Source: Haliotis rubra
Taxonomy: Eukaryota
Length of the DNA stretch: 64,000 nt
Reading direction: 5' to 3'
Assembly: GCF_003918875.1 (NCBI RefSeq)
Contig: NW_025765969.1
Location: 1,302,001 to 1,366,000 of the forward strand
Both the position numbers and the translations under genes were made by a program. Under the pieces are notes generated by a model. The model searched no databases. It saw nothing but the letters and a program-made list of their open reading frames with translations, and had not been told where the DNA came from. The first letter of the stretch is position 1. Each line of letters opens with the position of its first letter. Positions 66 through 64,000 of the stretch are shown piece after piece.

Positions 66-340
66 TTATTGTTGAAAATTATAAGTGTTGTTTGCTTCAG
101 CACAAAGCTTGCTCTGTCTCAAATGCTTATGAAGACTCGTCCTGTATTTGTAAACTTTGCCGCAGACACACGTGAAACTGCGTCCTTCGTGCACAGATTC
201 CATGTGAAACAACCTCCCCACATTCTTAGCAAAAACTCTATCACACTTGGGGCAGGGAAACCTAGCCTGTTCAAATCCACTTTCTGCCCAAGTTTGAAGA
301 TGTTGACTGACTGAGTTGCCATAGTAACTATCACCATGAT
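66..340 (-). CDS. Gene A variable terminal exon A13, C2H2+C2HC zinc-finger pair
   Basis: Phase-1 acceptor tttttgttggtttcag; CPKC-x12-HMESVH...CVC-x12-H; stop at 66. Confidence 0.85.
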
Positions 341-1302
341 CTGAAACCAACAAAAAATTGAGACTGCAGAACACTTCACACCAGGACAGGAAGTACTAAA
401 TTCATTGTGTAAGGCAAATAAATATGTATGTTTCATTTGCTGTGTTTATGGATAAATCAACACGGAAAGAGCATGTTAAATCAATATTTTCACCCCAACC
501 GTTAGGTTTGGAGTGAGTGAGTGAGGTATTACACTGTTGAGCAATATTCTTGCAATATCAGGGTGGAGGGACTTCAGACAATGTACCCAAGCGGGTAATC
601 AAACAAAGGTCTTTAATGCGATGAGTGAACAGTTCAACCCCTACTCTACTTAACTGCCCCAGCTTGCCAGTTGAAAGTGTCTGACCAGTGAGTCAGACAT
701 CTTCACCTGTAACCGTGAAACGTCAAAATCTGCAACTGATCTATGTCAATAGTGGTGTTATTTCCCTCTGACATGGTCATTTCTGCATGTAGCATTCATT
801 CATTTTTATGTAGTTGAACAAAAAAAGACTGAGAAATACTGATCACTTTGTCTTTTCTTCATGCATCACTGACTATGATATGTTTAATTGCTGGAACCAT
901 TATTGGAAAATGACATAAAAATGTTTCAGCAATATTAGAGAATCAAACTGGGGTGTTGGCATGGTGGGCCAATGGCTGAACCACTGGGCTACCTACCTGC
1001 CCATTAACCACAAAATAACCAGTCAAGATCAAAAGCCTTTGTCTGTACATCATGAAGATATGTATTGGTAACAGCAATATGCGATTACTATATGATTTGG
1101 TGACCACAATATGTGATCTCAGTATGTCTTGGTAACTCAATTAAAAACATTTACAAAATTTCATGAATGTTCGCTTCTTGTGATCGTGAATAATGAATTG
1201 AATTCATTTGGGATACGGTTGGTTTCGCAAAAGACACGAGTAAATGATAACCCTAGTTTTCACCTCATCAAATTTCCACAACTCCATTGAGGCTAACGGT
1301 GT

Positions 1303-1586
1303 TTAATGATGGTCTGTATTGTTGTCATGGTGATTTGACACCTTCATCACGACACAAGTTCTCTGATGTCTCTGCAAGCCTGTTCGATATTTATAAACCT
1401 TTCCACAGTTACACATAAAGACGACCTGGTCGTGAACGGTCTCAACATGATAGACTCTTGCAACATAGTTTGTGAACACGCGGTCACACTGAGAGCAAGG
1501 GTAACCACCAACATTCAAATCACTCCTCGAATAACCAGAACTGGACTGCCCACTGTAGGGATACGAGTCTGTGTAGCTTTGCAAAC
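1303..1586 (-). CDS. Gene A variable terminal exon A12, zinc-finger pair
   Basis: Acceptor tcttgttgctttcag, phase 1; CSQC...HVETVH...CNC...HQRTC. Confidence 0.85.
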
Positions 1587-1683
1587 CTGAAAGCAACAAG
1601 AAAGCTTTTTCTAGTTCAACGACTTTATTACATTGTATGCTGCATATCTGAATGTGTTGCAAATACCAGGATATCAGAGCTAA

Positions 1684-2000
1684 GGCCAGATTAATTTTAT
1701 TTTTTGTTTTACAGTTCCACCTGCCGCATTTTTTCAAGAATAAGAAAAAGGAAAAGAATTTTCCCTGCTCAAAAAATAAAATCCTAAAGTTTTTATTGGC
1801 CAAAAATGTAAATATACAAGAAATTTTGTTTTTAGATTGGTTTTTGACCCATATACACTTCATAAATTGCCAAAAGTAACATACTTAGAGTATTTAGAAG
1901 AAATACTACTTTGACTGGTGACTTAAAATTTTCCCCCCTCCTGCCTTTAGGTTTTTCGAAGACAATAATCCGTAAAACAAGAAATAAAATTGGTCTGGCC
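1684..2000. mobile_element. MITE, PIF/Harbinger-like
   Basis: TIRs ggccagattaattttattt / aaataaaattggtctggcc flanked by TAA on both sides. Confidence 0.65.
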
Positions 2001-2783
2001 TAAAGGAAGGAAGAAAATCAGGTCACATCTGCTGGTGAAATCATCTGCTTTATAGCCTTTCTAATCAATATAATCTTAACTATATTACACAGTATGTTGC
2101 AGGTTTCAATGTGTTCCAAATACCAGACAATCCATGGATCAACAGCATGAGCATCGATCTATGCAATTGGAAACTGATGACATGCGTCAACCAAGTCAGT
2201 GAGTCTGACAAGCCGATCCCGCTAAGGTATCAGAGCTAAAAGGATAGCAAGGAAACTAGGTCATATCCACTGGTGAAATCATCTATGCGTCCTTTCGAAA
2301 GGAAATTAGTGCCGACTTTATCATACAGTATACTGAAAATCTGACTTTGTTACAAATTATAGGTACCAGAGCTGAAGCAACCAGGTCAGATCCAGAGCTC
2401 AGGAGGTGTCTCCATCAGCTAATGAGGTATTTTTTATTAAACTGTCTTGTTGAGTCCAAGCATGGAGTAAATGACACATCAGTAAGTGTGGTCTGTCTCA
2501 GGCAAATTCAACCACTAAGTGGCAAACTCAAAAACAGATTTGAAAACTAGGTGAACGTCATTTTCTTATTCTGTATTTGTGATATTTAACAAGTTGCTAA
2601 AAGTATAACTGCACTTCACTGACACATTTCAGAACACATTTCCTCGATCAAGGTTTGATGGAACTGAAAAATCTACTGGCAAGTCAAGAAAATGGTGTAT
2701 TACTTCATTTTCGGACTTCTGAAAGTTTGTTCAGTAACAGTTCTTATTCTGAATGTCAAGTAATTCTAAGCACGAATGAAACA

Positions 2784-3088
2784 TCAAGGTCTTGACTCTT
2801 CCAGTGCCCTTTTAGCTGCGGCGCAATCTGCATTCTGTCTCATATGTCGTTGTAAACCAGTCCTATATTTGTACATCTTTCCACAAACACATACAAAAGT
2901 CATTTCCTCATGAACAGTCTCCATGTGATACTTTCGAGTCTTGGGGTTCATAAACACACGTTCACATTCGGAACATGGGAATGAGCCTTTCCCGTCAGCC
3001 TGGAAACCCTGAACAAAGTCCTGATTGTAGGCCAAGCCCGAATAGTCTCTACCCTCTACTTGATAAGAATATCGCTCATCGGGATAAC
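2784..3088 (-). CDS. Gene A variable terminal exon A11, zinc-finger pair
   Basis: Acceptor ttttttgttgctttcag, phase 1; CSEC...HMETVH...CVC...HMRQNADC. Confidence 0.85.
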
Positions 3089-3567
3089 CTGAAAGCAACA
3101 AAAAATCTAGGTCTAATTCCTACCAATTAAGGTGTTGACTCAACTGGAATATGTATTCCTGTAGGTGCTGGCAGATGGTATGGACATGGAGTCACAAAAA
3201 AAACATCCATCTCACACAATATATTTGAATTTTGTCACCAGCTCAAGCTCTGGGTAGTTTTGATATGCAAACCAATGAAAGACACCTTTAATACCCAATT
3301 TTTCATGATCACAATATGCTGAGGCACTTCAACAACAATGAATCATTTCTGTGGAAATTGTCCAAATTGACAAGGACTTATAGAAAACACCTTCAGAAAT
3401 TTATATAGCAATCACTTGTCTGTCAAATAGACATCAACTTTCCTTTCCACCATACTGATTCCATAATGTGACACCACTTCACAAACCTATAACTTGTGGA
3501 AGAACCAACCTAAACATCTGCTGGACAATTGACCATCGAAAGACATCAAGACAGTTGTCAGCTTAAG

Positions 3568-3723
3568 ACTGACTGACTGAGTTTGGTTTTACGCCGCTTT
3601 TAGCAATATTCCAGCAATATCACGGCGGGGACACCAGAAATGGGCTTCACACATTGTACCCATGTGGGGATTCGAACCTGGGTCTTCGACGTGACTTTAA
3701 CCACTAGGCTACCCCACCACCCC
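3568..3723 (-). mobile_element. tRNA-derived SINE family 1
   Basis: A/B-box head, gatattgctggaatattgctaaaagcggcgtaaaac tail, TSD tgtcagcttaaga. Confidence 0.85.
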
Positions 3724-3834
3724 TGTCAGCTTAAGAGAATCACCATTGGAGGACATAAGACAGTTGTCAGTTTGAGATAAACACAAACCCCTGCCATAAA
3801 TCTTGTACAAATCACCAAAGTGCACTGTCCTGCA

Positions 3835-4162
3835 TTATTCATGTTTCTTCTTTGCGGCACACAAAGGACTGGTTCTCATATGTCTCTGAAGTCCAGTTCG
3901 CGGAATTTGTAAACTTTTCCGCAATTACAAGAGAAATCAATTTGTTCGTGTACAGTTTCGATATGGTAGCGTAATGTTCTGTATTTCATGAACACTCTAT
4001 CACACTCAGAACACGGGAAAGTCCTAATTCCTTCAGACGGAGGGTACAGGCCTGAACCTAATCCTGGATTCATACTGTACAACACTTGTCCCCCTCGCTG
4101 ATCTATTTCCAAAAGAGCATTTTGTGGACCACGTTGGAAAGTACTCGCACAACCATCAAAAT
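3835..4162 (-). pseudogene. Gene A variable exon A10, zinc-finger pair with frameshift near 3900
   Basis: Acceptor tttttgcttactttcag, phase 1; ttc-cg-cga-act carries 2 extra nt; the corrected frame reads KFRTGLQRHMRTSPLCAAKKKHE*. Confidence 0.75.
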
Positions 4163-5294
4163 CTGAAAGTAAGCAAAAAGTGGTCTTGTATTGACGTTAT
4201 CCCTCGTTCAAAATATCGGTCCACTTCATATTGAGCAAAAACAAAGCGAATAATCCATCTCCAAGATGGAACCAGTTGGAAATCATTTTGTGTTGAGATC
4301 CAATTCACACCATCCATGACAAACACTGGTAAGAAAGTAAACCATTTCAAAGAAAATGGCAAAAACAAGTAACAAGAAGACTTATTTCAAATGTTTACTT
4401 ACAAACGGAATGGCATAAAATACATTCTGTATACGGTGTAACGATAAGTAGAATCGACATGGCATGGTGATGATTATGACAATACTGGGAGAGAAACACA
4501 ATGTTCAGTTGTACGAGAACATAACCATATGAAACTTACTGACGATACACATGTAAAATGAAACACAAAAATGGATGTTTAAAAATCTGTCTTCTTATTC
4601 CACATTATTTATCTTGTTTCTTTCACACTATGCTAAACTACATCTGTGCAGCGAAGGTAACGTAATCTTATTATCATCAGCAAAATACACCCAGTCTCTG
4701 TCCCAAAACCATGACAAAATATGGGATGTCCATAATAGTAAAATACACATTAAACACATGATATGGCCCCCCTTATTTGTTTCACAACTCTGAACAGTCT
4801 GTAATGATGGACTGTAACAGGAAAATGATCTCATGCCGGACAGGTTAAGTGTAAGTTGAATTTCACACTACTTTAGGCAATATTACAACAATATTAGAAC
4901 AGGTAACACCAGAAATCAGCCTATTTAACCTGTTAGTAATCAAACCATGGCCTGAAGTGTCTTGAGCAGTCACTTTACCCACTGGGCCACCCCACAGCCC
5001 CTTTCAACTGACACAGTTTTTCTAACAAAGAGTAAGAAACTTGACAGATAACGATATCTTTCACTACACAACCAAACTTGTAACCATCAGGATTACGAGA
5101 GATTATGCACTTCTTTGCTGGTTAATAGTGACACTTAGCTATTTTCACAATTCGTACATCTGACAACTGAAAGTCTTATTAGTGAGTGAGTTGGGTTTTA
5201 TGCCGCTTTTAGCAATATTCCAGCAATATCACGGTGGGAGTCAGAAAGTCTTATTAGGAAATCTCTCAATTTCTAAAGACTTCAGTGAATAACA

Positions 5295-5566
5295 TTAAAT
5301 ATTAGCTCTCTTCGCATCAAGATACATCTGACACAACTTCTGATGCCGAAGCAAACCAGTTCGGTATGTGTAAACCTTTCCACAGATACAAGAAAATACT
5401 GTGTTATTGTGAATAGCTGCAATGTGGTTCCATCTAGCCCCAGTATTGGAGAACGCCTTATTGCACACGTAACAAGGATGACTGCCCTGTACAGGTAAGT
5501 GACCAATACTGGTAGCGGTTTGAAACTCTTCAGTAGGATCAACTGAGGTTCTGTAACCACGATAAC
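5295..5566 (-). CDS. Gene A variable terminal exon A9, zinc-finger pair
   Basis: Acceptor tttttgttgctttcag, phase 1; CYVC...HIAAIH...CIC...HQKLC. Confidence 0.85.
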
Positions 5567-5684
5567 CTGAAAGCAACAAAAAGTCAGTTCTAAATTTCTT
5601 CAATACATGAACCTGTCATTTCAGTTGCTTTCAGGCCTACTTTCCAAACTGATGTTTCAGACCATTATGCAGTCTTGGTCTGAG

Positions 5685-5850
5685 TGAGTGAGTGAGTATG
5701 GTTTTACGCCAATTTCTAGCAATATTCCAGCAATATCATGGTGGGGGACATCAGAAATGGGCTTCACACATTGTACCCATGTGGGGAATCGAACCCGGGT
5801 TTTCGGCGTGACGAGCGAACCCTTTAACCACTAGGCTACCCCAACGCCCC
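5685..5850 (-). mobile_element. tRNA-derived SINE family 1
   Basis: Full-length copy, (actc)n tail, TSD cagtcttggtctga. Confidence 0.9.
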
Positions 5851-6096
5851 TCAGTCTTGGTCTGAACATGGACTATTAAATAGATCAAAGAGATCCTGTT
5901 TCAGCATATCTGTTCCAGACTGACAGTGAAACTGGTCTCTTCTTGAAACAAACTGGCTTTGAACGATTAACTGACAAGGGTTATCAAGTACCACTTGTGT
6001 CCATCAGTATCTTTTGACAAACAATCAGGGGAAATTCAAAATGCTCCTGACTATAAACTTTACAACAGCTGTCTTAATGGGAGTCAATGACAAAAT

Positions 6097-6254
6097 GAGT
6101 GAGTTTGGTTTTACACTGCTTATAGCAATATTCCAGCAATAGCACGTGGGGGACACCAGAAATGGGCTAACACATTGTACCCATATATGGAATCGAACCT
6201 GGGTCTTCGGCGTGAAAAGCAAACGCTTTAACCTTTAGGCTACCCACCGTCGCC
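6097..6254 (-). mobile_element. tRNA-derived SINE family 1
   Basis: Aligns to the copy at 5685-5850. Confidence 0.8.
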
Positions 6255-6540
6255 AATGATAAAATGAACTGATTTACAAAAGCTGAAGTTCAAATACAAT
6301 TTATAATCCAAAACTGTGTTCCACAGGAGATATTGCTTGTGTGAGATCAAACGATATCTCCTAGGAAATATCGTTTTGACAGTAGATTTTGTACAATGCC
6401 CTAACAATGCTATGACATCATGTACTTGATGACGTCACAATGCTATGACATCGCTGCACTGCAAGTCTTAGGCAGTACCATGTTCAGATATGTACATCTT
6501 TCATTGAAAATTAATGAAGAGTGATTTTGGATGATAAATA

Positions 6541-6684
6541 GAATCTCACCCTCGTGTCTTCTGATATCAAATATATCAACACTTGTTGATAAAAGTAAAA
6601 ATATCTTCGGCAAGCCTCGGATATTTGTAACTTTATCAACTCGTGTTGATATAATTGATATCAGGAGACACTTGGGTGAGATTC
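6541..6684. repeat. Long imperfect palindrome (about 65-bp arms)
   Basis: gaatctcacc...gatatcaaatatatcaacac mirrored by gtgttgatataattgatatc...ggtgagattc. Confidence 0.75.
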
Positions 6685-6965
6685 TCTATGTATTCTAAAA
6701 TTTGAAAATGATTTTTCCACAATCACTGCTCTCTAAATGACGGTAGCAGACAGTTGTTGGCATTGATCCCAACTGCATAGACAGATGCTAAGCATGTCAA
6801 TCACTGAATCGTCTGGTCAAGAATCGATTATTTACAGACTGTCGTAATAGAGCTGAAATATTGCCGAGGGCAGGATTAAACAAAAAAACAAAGCAGAGAG
6901 TGATACTCAAGACAAAACAGATGCTGACTGGTGACCATCATGCCATACACTGCCAATATTCCCTT

Positions 6966-7323
6966 TCATTTGGCACCAGATTCAGCAGACATAATGAACA
7001 TGCTGCAGGATTTCTGGTGCCGCATAAGTCCAGTTCGGTAAGAATACACTTTCCCACAAACACAACGGAAGTTGTTATTCTCATGAATAGCCTCGATATG
7101 ATTCCATCGGGCGCGCTTTTATTTGAAAATGACTTTTCACACTGTGGACATGGGTATAATCTTAGGTGGCTTTCTTCAGAAAGGTAACTGTCTTGGCCTC
7201 TATCAATATGTTCTTCCCTCATGCTAGTTGCGGAAAAATTTGGATGTGCAAAACTGAAGCGACTATGACTGGCAGCCATTATCCTTTGATCATTACCGAA
7301 CCCTGCCATTGAACGTCCCAAAC
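6966..7323 (-). pseudogene. Gene A variable exon A8, zinc-finger pair with frameshift near 7112
   Basis: Acceptor ttttttgtttctttcag, phase 1; agc-gc-gcc-cga carries 2 extra nt; the corrected frame reads SARWNHIEAIHENNNFRCVCGKVYSYRTGLMRHQKSC. Confidence 0.75.
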
Positions 7324-7942
7324 CTGAAAGAAACAAAAAATTTAGATCTTTAATGACAAGATCTTTTAAACTTCAGGAAATGAAAATTTCAAAGCATTTC
7401 ATTTCTCCTACACAAATTTCTTGGTTTGATTTCATGGTTTGAAACAACATCCTAAATTCTTACCACAGACTTGAGTGAATTAAGCCATCAAAAAGTTGTG
7501 AATGTTGAGTGTGAGTGAGTTTTATGTAGCTTTTAAGCAATATTCCAGCAATATCACAACGAGGGACACCAGAAATGGACTACAGGCATTGTAAACATGC
7601 GGGCAATCGAACCCGAGTGTTCAACCAACGAACACTTGAACCACTAGCCTACCTAACCAACCTTGTGAATACACAAGTGAATGAACTTGAATATCTTTGA
7701 GTTGAGTAAAGCATGACATTATCTTAGAACTCATTCCCAACATGACATTATCTTGTGATTCATTCCCTACAGTTCCTAGTTTACCATAACAGTTCCTTCA
7801 CCAACGGTATCCATCAGACTGAACTGCTTCATCATTCATTTTGACAAGCGTCTTCCTAGCATTTACACATATCAGAGAAAACTCTAACTCACACATCCAA
7901 ACAATTGAAGGAATCCTCTTACCAACATGAATGTACAAAACA

Positions 7943-8274
7943 TCATTTTGGTTGTGCCTCTGTTTGAGTTTTGTTTTCTTGAAGTGAAAACAGACTACAA
8001 TTTTTCTGATGTCTAAGTAGTCCAGGTCTGTATGAATATTGTTTCCCACAAACACAGGTGAGATTTACTTTCTCGTGGACACATTTGATGTGATACCATC
8101 TAGAGTTGGCATTGGAAAACACTTTTTCACATCTAGAACAAGGATATGACCGATTTCTTGTTTCACCAGGCACATGAAAGGATGCATATTCTAATTGCTG
8201 ATTGGGCATTCTCCTCACATTCTGGGCACCAAAAGAATGGTTAAATCCACCCAAGCTCCAATAAGCATGATTAT
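7943..8274 (-). CDS. Gene A variable terminal exon A7, zinc-finger pair
   Basis: Acceptor tttttgttattttcag, phase 1; CSRC...HIKCVH...CVC...HQKNC. Confidence 0.85.
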
Positions 8275-8440
8275 CTGAAAATAACAAAAAACTTCGGTTC
8301 ATATCCTGTTCAACACCACTAATGTTACTCAACAATTATTCTTATTAAAAAAATCCCAACAAAATGGCCCAGTTTCTACAGTAATACAGGAAGTCAACCA
8401 GTTTTGGAAGAAAATGGTTACTGTGTTGAACTACCAAGAA

Positions 8441-8881
8441 CAGACTTGCCTACCCCCTTTTAAAGAAATAGTAAGATCAGCTAAAAAAAATAGTAAGGCA
8501 GGTGCATTTGATAGTAAGGCATGTTAATGTCAAGAGATAAAGGAAAAACATTGCTGGTTAAAATCTTAATATAGTGTTTAATAGTCAATTAGTCAAATGT
8601 GGTGCCGATCTAACTGACGTTTTAAAAAATCTTTCACTTTGAAATAAACTTTACCAGCACTGTTAGATGCAAAGATTATTTATTTATAATGTTTTCGATG
8701 CGACTTCTGTTTTCAGTACTTTATGTACCGTAAATGACTCTGTAAATAGCATGGGCATGCCTATATCTAGTATTCTACCACTTATTTGTAGAAGTAAGGA
8801 ATTTCAGTATGATCGTAAGGTCGTAATTTAGCACCAAAAATAGTAAGCCTTACGCCCAAATCGTAAGGATAGGCAAGTCTG
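8441..8881. mobile_element. MITE (non-autonomous DNA transposon)
   Basis: TIRs cagacttgccta / taggcaagtctg, direct flank caagaa. Confidence 0.7.
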
Positions 8882-9291
8882 CAAGAATTCAATAAGAATT
8901 AACAACCCCCAAGACGACAAACACTTGAATCCCCTCAGTCCTGAATGTGTAAATGCAAACTGCTCTATGAAAAGGACAACACTTTTCAAGCATCACAGCC
9001 TGTGCCTATTACTTTTGAGTTCCTTAGTATAACTAGTATTTCTATTTTGCATATTGTTTTCAATAAATATAGGTCTTGGTTCCGAGCTGATTTTACCCCA
9101 CCATAGTACTAGACAGTGTTTTTCAGTAGTATTAAGCAGCAGACGGGCATCATAACAGCTCAAATGCTTGTCACATATGCACACACATAAGAAAACAATC
9201 GGTTGTATAAATTCAGCGCATACAAGCTCGAGAAAGAATTTGAAAGTATCACTTTGCATTTTCAGCTCATACCAACAAACAATGTCACTTT

Positions 9292-9629
9292 TCATCCTTC
9301 AGTGTTCAAGGGTTCTGGTGGAGTCTGATTAACCAGCGCCACACTACAAGTTTTCTGATGTTTCAACAGTCCTGGTCTGTAGGTATACACCTTGCCACAA
9401 ACACAAGCAAAGCTGACATTCCTGTGAATAGCTTCAACATGGTTCCTCCTAGCTGTAGTGTTAGAAAACACTTTGCCACACTCCGTGCACTCAGAACCTG
9501 AAGGTCTTAAGCCAGGGGTTGAAAAGTTTGAATGTCTGGGATACAATGACTGAGTAAAATATGAAGCAAGTTTTGCCTTGTACATCCTGTCTTCCCATGC
9601 GTGACTAGGATAAGGTCCCTGGTTAGGAC
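9292..9629 (-). CDS. Gene A variable terminal exon A6, zinc-finger pair
   Basis: Acceptor tttttgttactttcag, phase 1; CTEC...HVEAIH...CVC...HQKTC. Confidence 0.85.
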
Positions 9630-10056
9630 CTGAAAGTAACAAAAATCTCGTCAGCTCCATTTTGTGTCGCTGTTCAACTTGAAAAATATTGGCAGTAAAT
9701 TAGGAGTGTATGTATAAGAGTAAATATAGATATTAGCTGCAGGCAGAAAATGCACAGCCCATGCATTACAGACGGAATTTACTTCCATTTCTTGGCGTCC
9801 ATTCTGGAAGCACCAAGAAAATGTCACTTTCTGAACAAGTTATTCTCAACTCTGTTTTCAGCTTCACATTGCAAGACAACTAATGCTGTGTTTTTCTGAC
9901 TTAGGGTGCAAGGCTTCAAAAATAAAAGAATGAGGAATCAATTCCAATTCTTTGTTACTAGTGAAAACAATAACCACTCTGCTTCATCCCCAGTTTACAT
10001 ATCATACAGTAAAGACCACTGTAAGCTAATGCAGGTCAGAAACATGTGCTATCCTC

Positions 10057-10483
10057 TACTGGTGTTCCGATTAATTGAAATAATCGAAGATTGGTCGCAG
10101 TGACCAAACGACCAAGCAATCAATCACATTTTCTCATAATCGAACAAACAATTTTTGAACTACTTTTTTAGTCTTTGAAATACTTGACAATGGAACATAT
10201 CTTAGAAGTTGTCAGGGCCTAAAAACGTGTTTAATTCTTAGAAAACTCACTTCACTAACTGAAAAGCCATGACTGAATATTTCTTGAAGACTCCAGAAAG
10301 TTTATGTTCATGATATATAAGTCATCACTGTAAAGTAGCAAGTTGCATCATGTTATACATATCTGCAATAACAACCTGGATAGGAAAATCTGAAAAATGA
10401 CGCTAACCAATTTTTTTTGGATGATTGTTCGTTGGTAATGAAGCAATCATCAATTGTGAGATTTCAACCAATTCCCAGCACTA
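10057..10483. mobile_element. hAT-like MITE (second copy at 41778-42187)
   Basis: 8-bp TSD ctatcctc; both ends shared with the 41778 copy. Confidence 0.7.
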
Positions 10484-10663
10484 CTATCCTCATGTTGTCC
10501 ATGGATGCAGTCAAACATTTTCTCTCCCAAACAGAATTAACTTAACCCAGCACAACCTTCACATATCTGGTTGCCTGAGAATAACTTTAACATCAGACTA
10601 ACATACACAAACTAGTATTAGTTTAAACAGTCTTTATTTTGACAGAACAAGAGTCAAGTCTGT

Positions 10664-11050
10664 GGCAAACTGGCTACAGGTCTTCTGGTGTTTGATCAAA
10701 CCCGGATGATATATGTACGTCTTCCCACAAACACATGTATATTCAACCGTATCATGAATGTATTTCCCCATATGACAGGGTGAGTCAATGTCAAGCCTGA
10801 AGACCAAGGGCAAACTGGCTACAGGTCTTCTGGTGTTTGATCAAACCCGGATGATATATGTACGTCTTCCCACAAACACATGTATATTCAACCGTATCAT
10901 GAATGTATTTCCCCATATGACAGGATGAGTCAATGTCAAGTCTGAAGACCAAGGGCAAACTGGCTACAGGTCTTCTGGTGTTTGATCAAACCTGGATGAT
11001 ATATGTACGTCTTCCCACAAACACATGTATATTCAACCTTATCATGAATG
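10664..11050. repeat. Tandem triplication (145-bp period) of the second finger and 3' end of exon A5
   Basis: ggcaaactggctacagg...atcatgaatg occurs three times. Confidence 0.9.
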
Positions 11051-11303
11051 GCTGCAATATGATTTCTCCTAGATCTAGTGTTGGCAAAAACTTTGTCACA
11101 TTGGGTGCAAGGCCATACTCGCTTCTGGACACCTCCAGGAAGATCTACATCACACATTTCCATTGTCCCCGTAGGAGGGCCTAAACTGGACATTGACAAG
11201 TTTCGTATGTTGCCTTGGAATGTATTGGGCATTAAATGGCTGCTTGTGTATCTTCCCTGTTCACATTGTGCTAAAGTTTGTCCAAATGAACTCCCATGAT
11301 AAT
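10936..11303 (-). CDS. Gene A variable terminal exon A5, zinc-finger pair
   Basis: Acceptor tttttgttcctttcag, phase 1; CTQC...HIAAIH...CVC...HQKTC. Confidence 0.85.
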
Positions 11304-12241
11304 CTGAAAGGAACAAAAATGAGAAATGACTTGTGACTTGTTCCAAACACACGGTGAAAATATTTCGCTTTATATATTTAGAAACATTACCCCAATCTAT
11401 GCTAAGTTTGTTCAACTTTATGTGGACATATTCCATTGTAAACAAAATTTGTGTTCCGACTTAACCTTATTCCAGCATGTCGTTTTCAATATTTCATGTA
11501 ATCGTCACTATCAACTCCAATATTATGTTCCTTATCTTGATGGAGGTATCGCTGTGATGAAGGACATGAAAACTTGATGTAATCACAATGAGTTTTATTT
11601 GTATCATTCACTTTTACAAATCATTCTTCAGCCTGACAGTCACAACAAAAACATACACACTGATTCATCATGTTCAGACACAGCGTCTCTTACAGACCTC
11701 ACAACTCAACTTAAAAACTCCAGGCAGGGATCTGCACTCAATTTTGAGCCATTGAACAATTACTCCCAAGTTATCACTGACATGGGGAATTGCGAGTTTT
11801 CTTTGGGAACCAATATATTCTCCTTCCCTGAATTAGCAAATTCTACACATAAAGAAGAATATTTTTTTAAATTAACCAAAACAATGTTGTTTCAGTTGAG
11901 TTTTACTTAGTATCTGCTCTACTGATGACCCAAGTAACCTTAGCTCCTAAGAGTGACATAAACATCTAACTAAAACGGAAAAGCAGCACATGTTCTGCGT
12001 TATTTGCTGTAGAAGAGTTCTTGAATGTGTTGTGCCTGCAATACTTGCTCTGTAATGCATCCTGAGTATGTGTGATATATTAGGTAATTATCCAGCATTA
12101 TGGTCTTAGGGTTTCATAGTTTTAATCGGTATTTGTGCACAAACAACTCAAGATTAATTGGTTAATTTGATTTTAAATACTTTATTTTATCTAGTTGAGC
12201 TCCAATGGGACTGACTGGTTGTACAACCTGCTACCAGAACA

Positions 12242-12707
12242 CAGAGCTCAAGATAAGGTTTAGCCCATGTGGGTACTGTACCCACTGTATTTTTTTGGAG
12301 TGGGTATTATGAATGTTGAGTGGGTATTTCAATTTCTGTTACCCACTGCTTTCAAATATGTGCGTATTTCAGTCATTTTACTCACCTAAGTATTATGTCA
12401 TTGAGTAAGTTTACTAAGCAGGTATGTTCTGCCTTATGTCATACCTAATCAAAACCAACTTATATATAATGGAAATCACTCATCCTATACTGACAGTACA
12501 ACACTTGCCCTATACTGATAGCAATCAATGTCATTTTCATTACGCAAGCGATTTTTTATAAATATATTCCGTACGCATTTGTTTTAAACTTTTTGCGTAT
12601 CTAACATTTTTAAATGCGTAATTGGTACACAACAATTATTTTTCAATGCGTATATGGGAATTTTCTATGCGTATTTTACCCGGATACGCAGCTTATCTGG
12701 GCCTCTG
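12242..12707. mobile_element. MITE
   Basis: TIRs cagagctcaagataag / cttatctgggcctctg, 5-bp TSD gaaca. Confidence 0.65.
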
Positions 12708-12954
12708 GAACATTAGTAAAAATCATACTATTAATACTTTAAAAAAAGAGAAAAAATTCAATTAAGAAAAATGCACTTTTGTTATGCAAACATCCATTCA
12801 TAACATGATGAAAATGTGAAGTCAAAAATCAAACACTTTAAAGTTTGATCCTAAACAAGAGAAAATGCCTGATAAAGTCAACCACAAAACCTGAAGGTCT
12901 TTCTTGTATCACTCGAACAGGTAATGAGTTCTTATGGCCACTCATCCCACAAAT

Positions 12955-13132
12955 GGGCGGTGGGGTAGTCTAGTGGTTAAAGCGTTGGCTCATCACGCAG
13001 AAGACCTGGGTTCGAATCCCCACATGGGTACAATGAGTGAAGCCCATTTCTGGTGTCCCCCGCCGTGATATTGCTGGAATATTGCTAAAAGCGGCGTAAA
13101 ACCAAACTCAGTCAGTCAGTCAGTCAGTCAGT
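12955..13132 (+). mobile_element. tRNA-derived SINE family 1 with (agtc)n tail; antisense to gene A
   Basis: Full length, TSD tcatcccacaaat. Confidence 0.9.
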
Positions 13133-13171
13133 CATCCCACAAATACAGCAAAATTATTCCAGGTAATTATA

Positions 13172-13542
13172 TCAGTTGAGTTTGCTCGCAATATGGACGG
13201 GACATGATCGAAGGTGCTTAAACAAGCCCGGCTGGTATTTGTACACCTTGCCACAAATACAGGAAAATGTTTTTTTCTCATGAACAGATTCCACATGATA
13301 CTTCCTAGCATTGGGAGTTGCAAATGTCTTGACGCACTCAAAACATGGATATTTTATTTCATGGATGGCTAGAGATGAACTCTCAGTTTGAAGCCTATGA
13401 AGAACATTCTGATCAAAGTCAAAGTACATTGGCAAGTTTTGAGGAGGATTTGTAAGGAACTGTTCTTGTTTGGGGGTCCTCCAGATAGTTTCAGGCTCGG
13501 TTACAGAACTGGCAGCTCTGTTTCCGCCCAAACAACTCGTAT
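13172..13542 (-). CDS. Gene A variable terminal exon A4, zinc-finger pair
   Basis: Acceptor tttttgttactttcag, phase 1; CFEC...HVESVH...CIC...HLRSC. Confidence 0.85.
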
Positions 13543-14059
13543 CTGAAAGTAACAAAAAGGCTGTGCTAATTTGCCTAAGTTTCACTGACTAAAATTCAAA
13601 GACAGCAGATGTGATCATGTCTTTCAAAAGCGTACTACAGTTTCAGATGATAGTCATTATAAAAAAAAAAGATGACTCATTCAGTAAGATTCCCAAATTA
13701 TACACCACCGCCAGCTGATCCAGACTTGCTTTTCCATGGTTTTTGACACCTTGAACATGTGACAAAAGACGAGTTGAAACAGTACAAGTATGACTGTTAG
13801 CCAACGAATAAACTCTAACATGACTCTGACATAGGAGCACCCTTAAAGGTATAATGCCACTAATATTAAGAGAAGTATCAAGGCACTGGAATAGTTCTTC
13901 ATTGGCTGCAATGAACTTAGGTCTTCTCCACTGGGCTTCACTATTTCTTTGTCTGATTTGCAAACTCAAAACCACTCATCCGCACATCTCAAAACTTGTG
14001 AATCAGTTACACTCATACGTTGTTCAAAATAAATTCAAGGTCCTTGTGATAGGAACAAC

Positions 14060-14403
14060 TTAATCGCCCTGCTCAATCTGAGCCTTGTACATGGAACATG
14101 ATTTTCGGTGATAAAACAGTCCAGTTCTGTACTTGTAAGACCTCCCACAAACACACACAAATGTAATGTTATCATGAATGGCTTCTTTGTGGTAATTCAA
14201 AGCGCAGGGATCTTGGAATATTTTTTCACACTTTGGACAGGGATATTGCTTTTTAGGCGGTTTCAGTTTCAACTTTTTATGCTGCACAATCGAATTATCC
14301 ATAGCATTCATGGACATGACAGGAACACAATTCTGAGCTTGGGCCAGGTTAAAAGACCACTCTTGTGTAAGTTTGTTCAGTCGAGCCATTTGGTCCTGAC
14401 AAT
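14060..14403 (-). CDS. Gene A variable terminal exon A3, zinc-finger pair
   Basis: Acceptor tttttgttgggtttcag, phase 1; CPKC...HKEAIH...CVC...HRKSC. Confidence 0.85.
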
Positions 14404-14498
14404 CTGAAACCCAACAAAAAGCTGCTGAATTGTTTCATCCAACCACAAATTATCACTACGGAGAAACAAGCAACAAATCCTAACCCTCAAGAAACTGT

Positions 14499-21520: not shown

Positions 21521-21531
21521 ACAATGGCGGA
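21521..21531 (-). promoter_or_regulatory. YY1-like motif TCCGCCATTGT upstream of gene A
   Basis: The same 11-mer lies at a similar distance (about 330 nt) upstream of the gene B ATG. Confidence 0.45.
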
Positions 21532-49248: not shown

Positions 49249-49345
49249 GACTGAAGTATTTAATTACACACTGTTTGGACTGAGTTAGGTAGGCAGGTTA
49301 TGAATGAGACTTGAACTGATGTTTTTGTTACTTCATCTGTAGTTT

Positions 49346-49975
49346 CATTGCTTAATGGTATCATTATCGTTTATTCATATTATGGTATCATTGCTTCATG
49401 GTGTGGTATCATTGTTTCGGATCATTGTTTCATGGTTTCGGATCATTGTTTCATGGTGTGGTGTCAATGCTATACCGTACAATGTTATTGCTTCATGGTA
49501 TGGTATTGTATCATTGCTTCATGGCATGGTATCATTGCTTCATTGTATGATATCATTGCTTCACTGTATGATATAGCTGTCTTTGCCTCATGGCATGATA
49601 TCATTGCTTCATTGTATGATATCGTATGATATGATAGCTGTCATTGCCTCATGGTATGATATCATTGCTTAGTTGTATGGTATCATTGCTTCATGGTAGG
49701 CTGTCATGTATGGTATGGTATCATTGCTTAGTTGTATGATATCGTTGCTTCATTGTATGATGTCATAGTTTAGTTGTATGGTATCAATGCTTCATGGTAG
49801 GCTGTCATGTATGGTATGGTATCATTGCTTAGTTGTATGATATCGTTGCTTCATTGTATGATGTCATTGTTTAGTTGTATGGTATCATTGCTTCATGGTA
49901 GGCTTTCATTGCCTTAATGAACGATATGGCCTCATGGTACGGTATCATTGCTTTAGCAGGCTGTATCATATCGTT
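49346..49975. repeat. About 20-nt degenerate minisatellite
   Basis: tatggtatcattgcttcatgg-like units. Confidence 0.85.
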
Positions 49976-51223: not shown

Positions 51224-51559
51224 ATGGTTCTAGACACGGTCCTGTTTTGGTGAACACATTTGGATACCCTTTCTCAGAGAAATTTGGTCACCATGTGCAG
51301 AAAGACTATGGCACACTTGTCAGTATTGCTTCAGACACAGACAAGTTACGTCCCTGGCAATGTGAACAGTGTGGAAAAGCTTTCACTAATTCTAAAAAAC
51401 AAGAAGTTGCATATTGAGGCTATTCATAGAAATGTAACGTATTCGTGTGTGTGTGGGAAGACCTACAAGTACCCGAGAGGTCTAAGTAGGCATCAGAAGG
51501 ATTGTGATTGGATAAATCAAGGAGACAAGGGTGAAGGGGAGGCCAGTGAACTTGATTGA
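51224..51559 (+). pseudogene. Gene B variable exon B11, zinc-finger pair with +1 frameshift in an A6 run (51394-51399)
   Basis: Acceptor ttattacttttcag, phase 1; removing one A gives CEQC...NSKNKKLHIEAIH...CVC...HQKDC. Confidence 0.75.
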
Positions 51560-52126: not shown

Positions 52127-52434
52127 ATATGTCAATGGATTCCAGCCTTGGTATAACTGTCCCAAGCATTCCAGCAGGTGCTTCACTGCCTTTGTATGGA
52201 GAGACATATTTTGAGGATAGTGATGGACCGGGTTTGGTCAGGAGGAGACACTGGCAGTGTTCACAATGTAGAAAAACATTCACAAATCCTAGAAATAAAA
52301 GACTGCATGAGGAGGCAGTACATGGAGATGCCTCGTACCCTTGTGTGTGTGGCCGTGTGTACAGATATAGCAAGAACCTCAGTAGGCATAAGAAAGAGTG
52401 CATTTTGAGGAACTCTGAAAACATTTTGCAATGA
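52127..52434 (+). CDS. Gene B variable terminal exon B12, zinc-finger pair
   Basis: Acceptor attttgttattttcag, phase 1. Confidence 0.85.
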
Positions 52435-52741: not shown

Positions 52742-53016
52742 GTTTGTTGGTCTCAGAGTGCCTCCTCCTTCCATCAGACGAATGTTTGACCGTTCAGTTT
52801 GGTGCTGGGGATAGCGTTGGGGCTTTGGGTTCCAAGAAACGTGTTTGGATATGCGATCAGTGTGGCAAAACGTTCACAAATTATAACAATAGGAAGTTCC
52901 ATATGAAGGCTATTCATGGAAACGCAAAGTACTCGTGTTTTTGTGGAAAGACGTACAGATATCCCAGTTGCCTGATGAGACATAAAAAGCATTGTGTCTT
53001 GACGTCAAGTCAGTGA
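52742..53016 (+). CDS. Gene B variable terminal exon B13, zinc-finger pair
   Basis: Acceptor gttttgttactttcag, phase 1. Confidence 0.85.
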
Positions 53017-53925: not shown

Positions 53926-54254
53926 GTCTGGGTTCAAGTCACGGTTTGTCGAGCACTCCTCCTCAGAGCTTTGGATGCTCAGTGCAAATGTTTCCCCGAC
54001 AGCATTATACGCAAAGTGTAGAACATAATTGGAAACATGGGGACTCAGGGGATGCCAGTAGGAAGCGTCTGTGGCAGTGTGAACATTGTGGGAAAACATT
54101 CACGGGGCTTCAGAATAAGAGGTTTCATATAGAAGCTGTTCATGGAAATGCATCGTATTCGTGTGTTTGTGGGAAAAGTTACCGTTACCCCCGTAATTTG
54201 TCAAGGCATCAGAAAGAGTGTTCTGCATATCTCCAGTTGGGACATATCTCGTGA
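53926..54254 (+). CDS. Gene B variable terminal exon B14, zinc-finger pair
   Basis: Acceptor ctttgttgcttgcag, phase 1. Confidence 0.85.
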
Positions 54255-54840: not shown

Positions 54841-55190
54841 GTCTTAGAATGGACCCAGTCATGGATAGTTCTGGCATGTATCACCCTAGTTCTCATGGCA
54901 TTACGGGCAGTTTGGGACCACGTTTGTCACTGATGCAAGGCACTCTTTCGATTCCGGGAAGTAAAGATTCTAACATGGCCCCCAAACCCACCTGGGCGTG
55001 TGAAGTTTGTGGGAAAATCTTCCAGACCCAGCAGAACAGAACTCTGCATGTCGAGGCATTGCATGATAATTTGACCTACCCATGTCCTTGTGGAAGAGTC
55101 TATAGTTACATCAAGAATTTGAACAGGCATCAGAAGTCCTGTTCTTTGTTTCAAGCATTTTATCAATCTGATCTTGAAAAGAAATCTTGA
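54841..55190 (+). CDS. Gene B variable terminal exon B15, zinc-finger pair
   Basis: Acceptor tttttgttgctttcag, phase 1. Confidence 0.85.
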
Positions 55191-55528: not shown

Positions 55529-55691
55529 GGGGGCGGTGGGGTAGTCTAGTGGTTAAAGCGTTGGCTCGGCACGCCGAAGACCTGGGTTCGAATCCCCACA
55601 TGGGTACAATGAGTGAAGCCCATTTCTGGTGTCCCCTGCCGTGATATTGCTGGAATATTGCTAAAAGCGGCGTAAAACCAAACTCAGTCAG
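55529..55691 (+). mobile_element. tRNA-derived SINE family 1
   Basis: Full length, TSD cctttagcctga. Confidence 0.9.
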
Positions 55692-55956: not shown

Positions 55957-56288
55957 ATTTTGGAACTGAGTCAAGACATTATTCTGGAAGTAATCGCCAG
56001 GAATCCCATGTGGGATATAGGAATGATTTCATGCCGTATATGCCTGGAGATAATCATGCTGGTTCTGTAACGTACGGATTGTCTGGTTGTCAAGGTGACA
56101 GTCCCAGACCACTGTGGCAGTGTGAAATTTGTGGGAAAACTTTCACTGGACAGCAGAATAAGAAGCTTCATGTTGAAGCTGTGCATAAGAACGTCACTTA
56201 TCCGTGTGTTTGTGGCAAGGTGTACAGATACCCTAGGGCTTTAAGTCGCCATCAGAAGAGTTGTGCTCTGTCGGGTCAAGTTGGGTAG
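55957..56288 (+). CDS. Gene B variable terminal exon B16, zinc-finger pair
   Basis: Acceptor tttttgttgatttcag, phase 1. Confidence 0.85.
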
Positions 56289-56522: not shown

Positions 56523-56836
56523 ATTTCGGAACAGACTCAAACCAAATGGGTTTGGATTATGGAGGTTCAACGTGTTCAGACAGAATTATATATGGAGTTA
56601 GTTCTTGTGATTTTGGAAAGCGCTTTTTCCATTGTGAACAGTGTGGGAAGATATTTTCCAGCAAGCAGACCAAGACTATACACATTGAGGCTGTACATGA
56701 AAACCTGACACATGAATGTATTTGTGGGAAAGTTTACAAATATCGGAGAGCATTGAATAGACACAGAAAACTTTGTCCTGTCTATTGTAGTGTATCTTCT
56801 AACAATTTAGGTTCATACAATATGGACTCTAAGTAG
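56523..56836 (+). CDS. Gene B variable terminal exon B17, zinc-finger pair
   Basis: Acceptor ttgtgttgctttcag, phase 1. Confidence 0.85.
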
Positions 56837-58020: not shown

Positions 58021-58343
58021 AGTGTATACCTGTTGGTTGTAGCACTGGCGAGGATGTTAGTTCTCGATGGCCCTGTACACAGTGCAGCAAGACATTTGCC
58101 TCACAACAGAACTTGGGAGTCCATGTTGCTGCCATTCATGAAAATATCACACATATTTGTGTTTGTGGGAAGGTCTACAAGTACCACCGAGGACTTCGAC
58201 ACCATCAGCTGAGTTGTGGCGTTCTTGTGGGTGATACTGCTGGAGATGGGAATGATGCGTACAGATGTGTCTGTGGAAGAACGTTCAATTGTCTGATCTG
58301 GCTTCAGAAGCACCAAGAGGAATGTCTGTTGATGATTGGTTGA
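58021..58343 (+). CDS. Gene B variable terminal exon B18, three zinc fingers
   Basis: Acceptor cttttattttcag, phase 1; WPCTQC...HVAAIH, CVC...HQLSC, CVC...HQEEC. Confidence 0.8.
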
Positions 58344-59940: not shown

Positions 59941-60293
59941 GATACGGATCCACCAATGTGAGTCTCGTCAGTCCTGATAATTGTAACCCAGGTTTTCCTG
60001 GAGACAGAGGTCAACAGCCTGGAATATTTGGATCCTATCTTGAAAACATCTCATCTTCAGAATTAAAACATATTCCAATGCTAAATTTGGGGAGAGTTGA
60101 GTCATTAGGCAAACGCAGATCTGTCCGGTGGCCGTGTGATGAATGTGGCCGAATTTTCACGGACCCTCATTCCCGAAAGCAACACAGGGAAGCCATTCAT
60201 GAGAAAGTCAAGTACACGTGTCACTGTGGGAGGGTGTTTTCTTATCGTAATACTTTACAGAGACATCAGAAGTACAATTGTGTGCTGAAATAG
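59941..60293 (+). CDS. Gene B variable terminal exon B19, zinc-finger pair
   Basis: Acceptor cttttgttgttttcag, phase 1; CDEC...HREAIH...CHC...HQKYNC. Confidence 0.85.
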
Positions 60294-61826: not shown

Positions 61827-61828
<2 letters not shown>

Positions 61829-61883
<55 letters not shown>

Positions 61884-61902
61884 ACAGACAGACAGACAGA
61901 CA
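61829..61902. repeat. (CA)n/(CAGA)n microsatellite
   Basis: Direct reading. Confidence 0.95.
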
Positions 61903-62360
61903 GGACAAATAGTGATTGTGTTGGAAGAGGTGTTTTTAGTCCAGACTGGTATCGTATATGCACTCTTGAGGTTAAATGGGAGAGAGTTCCACAAATATTA
62001 TATTTTCATTTCTGGCACACAGACACGTACATGTACCCATCATGCACCAACATGGCCATTTCCTGTATTAAGAAGCTCCATTCTTGATGTGATGCATGCA
62101 ACAAGGAAGTCTAACACACAGAATGAAGTGGCTCTTCCTGGGCATCATTGTTGAAAGACCTCAACGATGTGTTAGATTTCCTGACTTCCTGGGGCGGTGG
62201 TGTAGCCCAGTGGCTGAAGCGTCCACTCCTCATGCTGAAAGCCTGGGTTCAATTCCCCACTTGGGTTCAATGTGTGAAGCAGATTGCTGGTGTCATCCTG
62301 CTGGAATATTGCTAAAAGGGGCGTAAAACCATACTCACTCACACTGGCTTCTGAAGTCTA

Positions 62361-62525
62361 AGGGGCAGTGGGGTAGCCTAATGGTTAAAGCGTTGGCTCG
62401 TCACGCCGAAGACCTGGTTTGAATCCGACATGGGTACAATGTGTGAAGCCCATTTCTGGTGTCCCCCACCGTGATGTTCGGTATATTGCTAAAAGCGGCG
62501 TAAAACCAAACTGTCAGTCAGTCAG
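62361..62525 (+). mobile_element. tRNA-derived SINE family 1 (more plus-strand copies near 43105, 46345, 46839, 57023, 59457, 59655, 60338, 61102, 62191, 63411)
   Basis: TSD tctgaagtctaa. Confidence 0.85.
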
Positions 62526-63722
62526 TCTGAAGTCTAATGGATAGTACATCTGCCCAGAGGGGTGGAAGGTCAGTCATTTGATGACAGCTGCGTCATACCA
62601 AAAGACATTAAAGGAAGGTTCTTATGGTTACACTGGCAGTATCTGTGGGGTAAAACAAGTACGGGTTCATTCAGAGTCTGTGTTGTTTGTCTGAGTGTCG
62701 TATCAGTGTCAGTCTGCAACATGGTATGTGATAGCACTATAGAACCAGCCCTTAAACTAGTGGCTGGTTGGAGCAGCTTCTCACACACATGTACATCCAT
62801 CACACAGTGTTAGTGCACATCTATAGAATGCAACATTATATATAATTTCACTTGTGCTTCATGTGACATTTATGACACTTTGGATGCAACAAATCTTTGT
62901 GCACCATCAAGGAATCTATGTATTTTCACTCGTAACACAAAGACGTTCGGGTAACTTGTACAAAATGAACTATGCATATCCTTACCACTAGAAAACGATT
63001 CTATGTGGGCATATTTTCTAACAAACATTTTATTTGCAAAATCTCCTGATAGAATTGTGATGGAAACTCCCAGTATCTTCTGACAAACTGAGAAATAGAA
63101 ATGGAGCCAATACGGTATTCAAGAAGTATAGGACCAAGCTATTAAACCGTAATTTATCTTTCAGGACAGTTTGACAGTTTTGTAAATCTATCATTCAACA
63201 TGTTTGAAAGCCTTCTGAGTCATTCCTGTGATTAGCTGATTTAAAACCAAAGTATAATTCCGTATGAATTTCAAATCCTTGTTCTTTGAGCAAAGAATAG
63301 ATTGATATCCTGCCCTTTAGATTGCCAGGGATCATGGCCCAAGATAATAGCCGAGGAGTTTCTATAACTCATATATCACATGGAATGGTCCTCTTCACCC
63401 ATATCAGTCTGGGGTGGCGGTGGGGTAGCCTAGCGGTTAAAGTGTTGGCTCGTCACACTGAAGGCCCAGGTTTGATTCTCCACATGGGTACGGTTTGTGA
63501 AGCCCATTTCTGGTGTCCCCCGCCAAGATATTGCTGGAATATTGTTATAGGCGAGTAAAACTAAACTCACTCACTCACTCACATCAATCTGAAGCCCTGG
63601 ATATGTACGTTCTTGATCATTTGACTTGTAACAAGCATTTTCTATTGACTAAGTCTGTTTCCAATGTAACTGGCTGTCATCAGATTCTCCTTTGACTAAT
63701 GCCGCCCTTTTGTTACTTGCAG

Positions 63723-64000
63723 GTTCCATGGTATCCGTAGGTACTGAGTTAGGGAACAGCATGGGACAGTCTCGGGATAGTGACGACGAATTGCTCGCCA
63801 CTTTTGCTGCTAATATTTATGGCTCAGTCGACTCGGAAAACAAAAACGTAGGGAATTTGTTCAAGTGCGAGTACTGCAACAGATACTTCTCTAGTTCATA
63901 TTCACGAAACTCTCATAAAAAGGCTGTCCACGAAGGTGTCACTCATGGGTGTATCTGTGGCAAGAAGTACAGATACCGCCGAGGATTAATGCGACATCAG
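63723..64000 (+). CDS. Gene B variable terminal exon B20, zinc-finger pair, truncated by the window end
   Basis: Acceptor cttttgttacttgcag, phase 1; hand translation FKCEYCNRYFSSSYSRNSHKKAVHEGVTHGCICGKKYRYRRGLMRHQ; absent from the ORF track. Confidence 0.85.

Follow-up and report, generated by a model that had tools for sequence, protein, structure and literature searches.

The 64,000 nucleotides (nt) of Haliotis rubra DNA analyzed here (contig NW_025765969.1, positions 1,302,001 to 1,366,000 of the forward strand; hereafter the window) very probably contain two divergent members of an abalone gene family, in each of which a constant exon is joined to one of many alternative terminal exons encoding DNA-binding modules. 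An earlier note, made from the letters of this DNA alone, had proposed two head-to-head paralogs of a probable mollusc, each with a constant N-terminus lacking a BTB domain and with exchangeable terminal exons. The organism is indeed a mollusc, the abalone Haliotis, and RefSeq models join the constant exon to single terminal exons, here called cassettes. The two constant open reading frames (ORFs) of the window are 100% identical to H. rubra RefSeq proteins of LOC124275011 (minus strand, with many isoforms) and LOC124275018 (plus strand). These divergent, head-to-head paralogs are referred to as gene A and gene B, respectively. They were compared with the gene B orthologs of H. rufescens (LOC124128726, L001) and H. 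asinina (L002) and with two paralogous H. rufescens loci, LOC124130918 (L003) and LOC124128709 (L004).

The constant coding exon of gene A runs from the ATG at 21188 to 20297 on the minus strand and that of gene B from the ATG at 25676 to 26543 on the plus strand, and the two share 85% DNA identity. Both end in a phase-1 donor, GAC G/gtaatt after 20297 and GAT G/gtaatt after 26543 (slashes mark splice sites). Residues 1 to 297/298 of gene A are 100% identical in the RefSeq isoforms (P0058, P0061, P0064, and others), as are residues 1 to 289 of gene B and isoform P0001 of LOC124275018. The DNA of the gene B exon is 94 to 96% identical to the orthologous constant exons of H. rufescens and H. asinina. 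The last constant donors had been placed at 18260 and 28677 in the earlier note, but according to the RefSeq models the real phase-1 donors are those after 20297 and 26543.

In RefSeq proteins that match the window at 100%, the end of the constant part (...SND-G, last base 20297) is joined directly to a cassette. Residues 1–298 of isoform P0064, for example, correspond to 21188–20295 and residues 298–425 to 7324–6941, and the same constant-to-cassette jump is made by P0086, P0104, P0106, P0108, and P0066. At the DNA level, ...AAT GAC G/gtaatt and tttctttcag/GT TTG GGA... combine to encode ...SND-G-LGRS.... With the cassettes numbered from the constant exon outward, P0064 continues into A8, P0086 into A4, and P0108 into A10. 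The highest isoform numbers in H. rubra are X40 (LOC124275011), X21 (LOC124274989), and X18 (LOC124274985); two genes of H. rufescens reach X35 and X30, and the numbering in H. asinina goes up to X46. Models are also present in H. cracherodii, and in total the annotations of four Haliotis species carry this design.

All 34 cassettes of the window, 13 on the minus strand in gene A and 21 on the plus strand in gene B, were located as the earlier note had counted them, and each lies on the strand of its constant exon (34/34). The same co-orientation was found in three other loci (37/37, 31/31, and 31/32), the single exception adjoining a neighboring minus-strand gene. The cassettes are visible as series of stop-to-stop ORFs (66–16136 on the minus and 31129–64000 on the plus strand) whose translations start with (F/L)LLS(G/D) and end with ...CxCGKxYKYRxGLxxHxxxC. 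Every cassette follows directly after a YAG acceptor in phase 1, and the recurrent LLLSG or LLLSD is the translated acceptor, TTT TTG TTG CTT TCA G/G; both statements had been made from the letters and are upheld by the acceptors located here. The shared acceptor is unusually uniform (TTTTTGTTRCTTTCAG, approximately 18 bits). When a 17-nt matrix built from ten acceptors was used to scan both strands of the window (128 kb) at a threshold of 14 bits, 31 sites were detected, 26 of which are cassette starts on the correct strand; the remaining five open ORFs of at most 17 residues. The motif is missing at three ordinary acceptors of the multi-exon paralog LOC124128709, a small sample.

The cassettes of gene A occupy 16114 to 66 on the minus strand. 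Given from the acceptor to the end of the stop codon, they are A1 (16114–15828), A2 (14821–14499), A3 (14403–14060), A4 (13542–13172), A5 (11303–10936), A6 (9629–9292), A7 (8274–7943), A8 (7323–6938), A9 (5566–5295), A10 (4162–3876), A11 (3088–2784), A12 (1586–1303), and A13 (340–66). Cassettes A1, A3, A4, A8, A10, A12, and A13 end H. rubra isoforms at 97–100% identity, and A5, A6, and A11 match H. asinina isoforms at 80–90%. The 3' end of A5 (10664–11050, minus strand) contains 2.7 repeats of a 145-nt unit at 98% identity that duplicate the part encoding the second finger; the repeat is seen in the ORFs 10637–10840 and 10794–10985, both with ...EYTCVCGKTYIYHPGLIKHQKTCSQFA. It has the appearance of a partial tandem duplication of very recent date and may illustrate the origin of new cassettes.

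The cassettes of gene B extend from 31154 to 64000 on the plus strand and comprise B1 (31154–31470), B2 (32525–32790), B3 (33249–33589), B4 (34640–34995), B5 (35425–35684), B6 (37127–37407), B7 (38280–38575), B8 (40493–41340), B9 (44404–44771), B10 (47137–47432), B11 (48926–49248), B12 (51224–51417, with a finger remnant reaching 51556), B13 (52127–52434), B14 (52742–53016), B15 (53926–54254), B16 (54841–55190), B17 (55957–56288), B18 (56523–56836), B19 (58021–58343), B20 (59941–60293), and B21 (63723–64000), which is cut by the window edge. Isoforms of the H. rufescens ortholog LOC124128726 (up to X35) cover at least 15 of these 21 cassettes. They end in orthologs of B1–B4, B7, B10, B14–B19, and B21, and a 591-residue helix-turn-helix (HTH) product corresponds to B8. 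Just 3' of B11, at 49387–49912, lies a 21-nt minisatellite of about 23 copies with higher-order periods of 61 and 101 nt, the translation of which accounts for repetitive ORFs at 49315–49626.

The earlier count of 34 cassettes stands as far as the phase-1 acceptors are concerned; in this assembly, however, 30 of the 34 are intact. A8 and B12 are frameshifted. In A10 and B2 the second finger is truncated, although their orthologs in other species are intact. As expected, both arrays continue past the window; the H. rufescens gene B ortholog spans 91 kb and contains 37 intact cassettes with finger pairs, none of them on the minus strand. LOC124130918 has 31 cassettes, likewise all on the plus strand.

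Most cassettes encode a variable linker, a pair of C2H2 and C2HC zinc fingers, and their own stop codon. The scaffold PCxxCxKxF(x8)HxxxxH(x5)CxCGKxYxY(x6)H(x3-6)C is present in 27 of them, and the Pfam zf-C2H2 model (cut-off 25.2 bits) recognizes B9 (35.3), B20 (30.6), B5 (28.1), and A5 (25.4). Two cassettes do not encode finger pairs, as had been remarked before: B1 contains a zinc domain resembling the N-terminus of RAG1 (PF12560, E = 8.7e-5) and B8 a CENP-B_N and HTH_Tnp_Tc5 module according to Pfam.

The head-to-head pair and all 21 B cassettes are colinear in H. rufescens, and strict synteny is also seen with H. asinina. For each B cassette, both species have a 1:1 ortholog whose acceptor is at the corresponding position, and when the frame is counted from the acceptor, the ratio of nonsynonymous to synonymous substitution rates (dN/dS) is 0.03 to 0.52 (21/21). 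Purifying selection acts on the cassettes in precisely the frame that the acceptor dictates. Variation among the modules was measured in finger 1 at the eight residues that separate the conserved F from the first H, among them the canonical base-contacting positions. Identity at these helix positions is 97% for orthologs but 19% when different cassettes are compared, and no two of the 17 helices scored in the window are the same. Finger 2 varies less (99% identity among orthologs, 44% among cassettes). Such a pattern would be expected of cassettes that each have a conserved binding specificity of their own. The proteins are putative sequence-specific DNA binders.

Several points weigh against this interpretation. 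The RefSeq isoforms are Gnomon predictions; the NCBI pipeline as a rule reports alternative Gnomon variants only with supporting transcript alignments. An H. rubra gene B isoform with cassette B16 was not found in a search with the cassette region, which returned the H. rufescens protein only. The H. rubra gene B isoforms that were recovered (X1 and X4; P0130 and P0001) end in cassettes beyond the window, and the evidence for use of the 21 cassettes in the window thus comes from the H. rufescens ortholog. In H. rubra, gene B appears to be under-annotated. Some cassettes start only 95–234 nt past the preceding stop with no AATAAA in between; 3'-end formation is therefore not simply a matter of one polyadenylation site per cassette, and some 3' untranslated regions (UTRs) must traverse the next cassette. 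With uniformly strong acceptors, purely first-come co-transcriptional splicing would moreover favor the proximal cassette, and an additional mechanism of choice would be needed. Finally, DNA binding is predicted and the role of the constant N-terminal domain described below is putative; the structure model of this domain is unreliable (pLDDT, the predicted local distance difference test, of 53). A Logan contig (L006) considered as transcript evidence proved to be unspliced genomic DNA.

In the model that we propose, transcription would start upstream of the constant exon, a single large 5' coding exon encoding a domain of approximately 88 residues and a Ser/acidic-rich tail of approximately 200 residues and ending in the phase-1 donor. 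Some 35–45 alternative 3'-terminal exons per gene follow on the same strand over about 90 kb, and in each mRNA the single donor would be joined to exactly one of the uniformly strong phase-1 acceptors. The terminal exon would contribute a variable linker, one module (a finger pair, occasionally a transposase-derived HTH or a RAG1-N-like domain), and its own stop, after which the mRNA would end. With one terminal exon per mRNA, one promoter-proximal unit would thus yield dozens of proteins that share an N-terminus and differ in their recognition helices. It is reasonably probable that the main route of joining is cis splicing within one long primary transcript, coupled to the choice of the 3' end. 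Since all cassettes are co-oriented, cis splicing suffices; a contribution of trans-splicing is conceivable, and we consider it rather unlikely. The identical strong acceptors argue against choice by splice-site strength and point to choice by transcript extent or 3'-end formation, by internal promoters combined with trans-splicing, or by cassette-specific regulators.

The common intron contains a candidate for such control. Between the constant donor and the first cassette, strong conservation between genes A and B is confined to a 222-nt block and a 56-nt block (80%) around an AATAAA. The 222-nt element lies at 18343–18122 on the minus strand in gene A and at 28594–28815 on the plus strand in gene B, and the two copies are 94.6% identical. 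One copy per gene, 2 to 3.5 kb into the common intron, was found in all genes fetched. A comparison of window regions 18150–18340 and 28597–28790 with L001–L004 showed that the core of the element (143 columns) is 91–99% identical among seven copies, whereas its flanks are 23–51% identical between paralogs and unalignable. This conservation, over an element of approximately 145–190 nt, is far above that of the coding exon (81–89% DNA identity between paralogs) or of synonymous sites, at which the same paralogs diverge by 0.3–2.6. The element has a perfect 5' splice-site consensus, CAAG/GTAAGT, with the GT at 28678 in gene B. In the core, two within-species paralog pairs (98.6% for H. rubra A and B, 97.9% for H. 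rufescens B and LOC124130918) exceed cross-species orthologs (about 93%) in identity, which hints at concerted evolution, with 2 versus 10 differences in 143 nt and hence few sites. Short-tract gene conversion or lineage-specific co-evolution with a trans-acting factor may underlie this similarity.

In the element, a 13-bp inverted repeat pairs the candidate acceptor with a segment 35 nt beyond the donor, and the conservation reaches far beyond this stem. The predicted fold was no more stable than those of shuffled sequences (z = –0.2 sense and –0.1 antisense), and no covariation is seen because the columns are invariant. Rfam gave nothing at the gathering threshold in the window and chance-level matches only beside the element. 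By eye, the element contains the 13-bp inverted repeat, an AUGAUGG, and a CUGA, which were compared with the C box (RUGAUGA) and D box (CUGA) joined by a terminal stem in C/D small nucleolar RNAs; the C-like box varies between copies. Pairing of the docking and selector type known from Dscam was considered and rejected, as duplex energies between the element and the regions upstream of the cassettes were no better than those of intronic controls (p = 0.98).

The AATAAA block lies downstream of the element. In gene B, the AATAAA (29129–29134, plus strand) is located about 450 nt past the 5' splice site-like sequence, and its counterpart in gene A is at 18059–18054 on the minus strand. It is aligned in the H. 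rubra A, H. rubra B, and H. rufescens B copies; by BLAST, the conserved block extends to the H. asinina B ortholog, and it was not found in the paralogs L003 and L004. If it were spliced to the constant exon and its own 5' splice site left unused, the element would append VPQYSDDGGVVPGITR followed by a stop, resulting in a protein without a DNA-binding end. Two roles appear roughly equally probable, a regulated frame-shifting (poison) exon or terminal exon yielding a protein without DNA-binding domain on the one hand, and a U1-recruiting signal in the intron by which premature 3'-end formation or, as proposed for mod(mdg4) (PMC13490949), trans-splicing is controlled on the other. The element would help to control the extent or the splicing of the donor transcript.

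Among the alternatives to our model, the one that best withstands the data retains the architecture and replaces cis splicing by inter-molecular trans-splicing, with the donor transcript ending near the element and the AATAAA and the cassettes transcribed from their own promoters. The sharp boundaries of the element, its perfect U1-complementary AAG/GTAAGT, its extreme conservation across paralogs, and the aligned AATAAA in genes A and B are in line with this scenario, and near-identical acceptors would suit a shared trans-acting recognition step. In addition, intron 4 of mod(mdg4) contains a conserved U1-complementary motif downstream of which transcription is interrupted (PMC13490949). Deletion of this motif in flies, however, had little effect (PMC13490949), the AATAAA block is missing from L003 and L004 as far as could be found, and the co-orientation of the cassettes (34/34 here, and all but one in the three other loci) means that the abalone genes lack opposite-strand exons, by which trans-splicing had been recognized in flies. 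We therefore regard inter-molecular joining as the general mechanism as unlikely. A further step, a second and independent case of programmed trans-splicing not involving a spliced leader (or of U1-controlled premature termination) that produces a transcription-factor repertoire, is a distinctly tentative and improbable proposal. The element may then act as the cis-signal that retains the donor transcript until it pairs with one of about 40 uniform acceptors. If true, the mechanism of mod(mdg4) and lola, so far unexplained, could be studied outside the arthropods.

The earlier note had included in the constant part a mini-exon within the element (18305–18260 in gene A, 28632–28677 in gene B), to whose donor the cassettes would be spliced. 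The flanking sequences, a good acceptor-like one and the perfect donor, and the strong conservation fit such an obligatory last constant exon of 46 nt, or of 33 nt (28645–28677), the latter keeping phase 1 and reading AMMGAWFLASQ. The translation of the mini-exon, however, occurs in no frame in any of the approximately 140 RefSeq isoforms and paralog models examined; in the models, the large exon continues straight into a cassette or, in the case of L003 and L004, into the next modeled exon, with the element falling inside the intervening intron. The 46-nt form shifts the frame and leaves phase 2, the H. rufescens B copy has a 1-nt insertion inside it, and conservation is equally high about 35 nt upstream and about 60–110 nt downstream, which is not a coding pattern. 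An obligatory mini-exon is thus very improbable.

That the isoform models are annotation artefacts and the cassettes instead independent zinc-finger genes or pseudogenes of one exon each in an ordinary tandem cluster, for which the four degenerate cassettes and the predicted nature of the Gnomon models could be cited, is extremely improbable, given that every cassette ORF opens at a conserved acceptor in the sole phase fitting the constant donor, that the acceptor motif matches cassette starts at 26 of its 31 sites, that three species share the acceptor positions and frames and dN/dS, with the frame read from the acceptor, is well below 1, and that the same design was modeled independently in the annotations of four species.

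The constant protein begins with a domain of approximately 88 residues (25676–25939, plus strand, in gene B) that is nearly invariant among all paralogs and occupies the place held by BTB in lola. In an alignment of nine paralogs and orthologs, 58 columns within the first 88 residues are invariant. Between paralogs, dN is 0.05–0.12 and dS 0.6–2.6 in this domain, corresponding to a dN/dS of about 0.05–0.1. Because dS is high, the invariance reflects constraint at the protein level and not recent gene conversion, which is ruled out as its sole cause; the paralogs must therefore be old. The remainder of the constant exon (approximately 200 residues) is rich in Ser, Pro, and acidic residues and less constrained (dN/dS of about 0.35–0.4). 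A conserved stretch of this tail, VKQEPEDPDLIEIEPD (residues 172–187; 26189–26236, plus strand), is found in nearly all paralogs and contains by eye a candidate SUMOylation consensus (VKQE) followed by an acidic-flanked hydrophobic stretch (LIEIE) resembling a SUMO-interacting motif.

Pfam scans of both constant ORFs returned no family at E ≤ 1, and thus no BTB domain, as the earlier note had maintained. A profile of the N-terminal domain had no match among PDB sequences at E ≤ 10, and a feature search of the ESM Atlas gave sub-threshold leads only. The AlphaFold2 model, based on nine shallow sequences, shows a helix followed by four strands and is, at the confidence given above, unreliable. 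With phmmer, the constant region had ten matches among 1.84 billion cluster representatives, of which the nine named ones are all from Haliotis; the tenth, a 625-nt metagenome contig without assigned source, encodes the N-terminal domain. As far as the searched databases of annotated and clustered sequences show, the family is confined to abalones. The N-terminal domain is a candidate for a shared effector or oligomerisation module, new and strongly constrained.

At least four loci of the family are present in H. rubra, all on one 1.59-Mb contig, and six in H. rufescens, of which the three fetched ones fall within approximately 0.53 Mb of each other. The G+C content of the window is 34–43%. 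The two ATGs are separated by a divergent intergenic region of 4.5 kb (21189–25675) that contains copies of a short interspersed element (SINE), a 32/64-nt minisatellite (22621–22855), and a (GAT)n run (23428–23492). Upstream of each ATG, about 400–500 nt are conserved with H. rufescens, which is not the case for the rest of the region, and these segments are candidate promoters or 5' UTRs. The SINE-like repeat of approximately 160 nt occurs in more than 40 copies on both strands across both arrays and the intergenic region (e.g., 12955–13115, 22046–22206, 42436–42601, and 55530–55691), the closest pair being 97.5% identical, and is also abundant in the H. rufescens loci. An odd tRNA-like structure reported by ARAGORN at 48131–48219 adjoins one of the copies. 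The H. rufescens paralog LOC124128709 (L004:10001–20896) shares the N-terminal exon and the intronic element; in place of an array of cassettes, four ordinary exons lead into a QRICH1/DUF3504 C-terminus derived from a Crypton recombinase, and three finger cassettes lie downstream of its annotated end.

In keeping with the suspicion that such loci had not been described, full-text literature searches found none in molluscs. The gene models are named "uncharacterized protein" in the RefSeq annotations of all four abalones, meaning that the raw facts are public but uninterpreted. The closest parallels are found in insects. In lola, common 5' exons are joined to one of approximately 20 alternative 3' exons, most of which encode a zinc-finger pair, and the shared part is a TTK-type BTB domain, whose TTK motif was searched for and is absent from Mollusca (PMC11426971, eLife 2024). 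Both systems thus derive from one locus many factors with a shared N-terminus and different DNA-binding ends. The abalone genes differ in that their shared part contains neither BTB nor another Pfam domain and in that they have about twice as many cassettes per gene and four to six clustered paralogs. Trans-splicing has been demonstrated for lola, whereas the abalone genes are known here from sequence and gene models. The likeness to mod(mdg4) extends to a constant region with many alternative 3' exons (more than 30 in mod(mdg4)), to modules that are partly transposase-derived (FLYWCH there, CENP-B/Tc5 HTH and RAG1-N-like in abalone), and to a conserved U1-complementary motif in the intron after the last common exon, located about 0.3 kb into the intron in mod(mdg4) and 2–3.5 kb in abalone. 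Unlike the abalone genes, mod(mdg4) is BTB-based and arthropod-specific, and all its mRNAs are trans-spliced from independent promoters, some on the opposite strand, whereas the abalone cassettes are all on the donor strand.

Other systems are more distant. In insect broad and fruitless, a constant BTB-containing 5' part is joined by ordinary cis alternative splicing to a handful (three to seven) of alternative exons encoding C2H2 finger pairs; these genes resemble those of abalone in combining a constant part with alternative finger exons and differ in the BTB domain and the small number of alternatives. In clustered protocadherin and UGT1A loci, dozens of variable exons are arrayed in tandem, and one at a time is combined with a common constant part. 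The variable exons are 5' first exons with their own promoters, followed by the constant exons, and the layout is the mirror image of that in abalone, with choice by promoter and not by acceptor or 3' end. In genes of the Dscam type, the variable exons are internal, whereas the abalone cassettes are terminal exons with stops and without docking and selector pairing.

Common descent with the fly genes is not supported, as the named relatives of the constant region among the 1.84 billion representatives are all from Haliotis, and the abalone design is most simply explained by convergent evolution. Extrapolation from the loci read suggests that on the order of 150–200 proteins could be produced from half a megabase, and the repertoire of recognition helices, with its 1:1 correspondence among three abalone species, is suited to the mapping of binding specificities. 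The abalone loci also allow asking what such a design needs, be it uniform strong acceptors, a single phase, or a conserved element in the common intron. Taken together, the comparison suggests that the design of lola and mod(mdg4), treated as a BTB-linked peculiarity of arthropods, has evolved at least twice.

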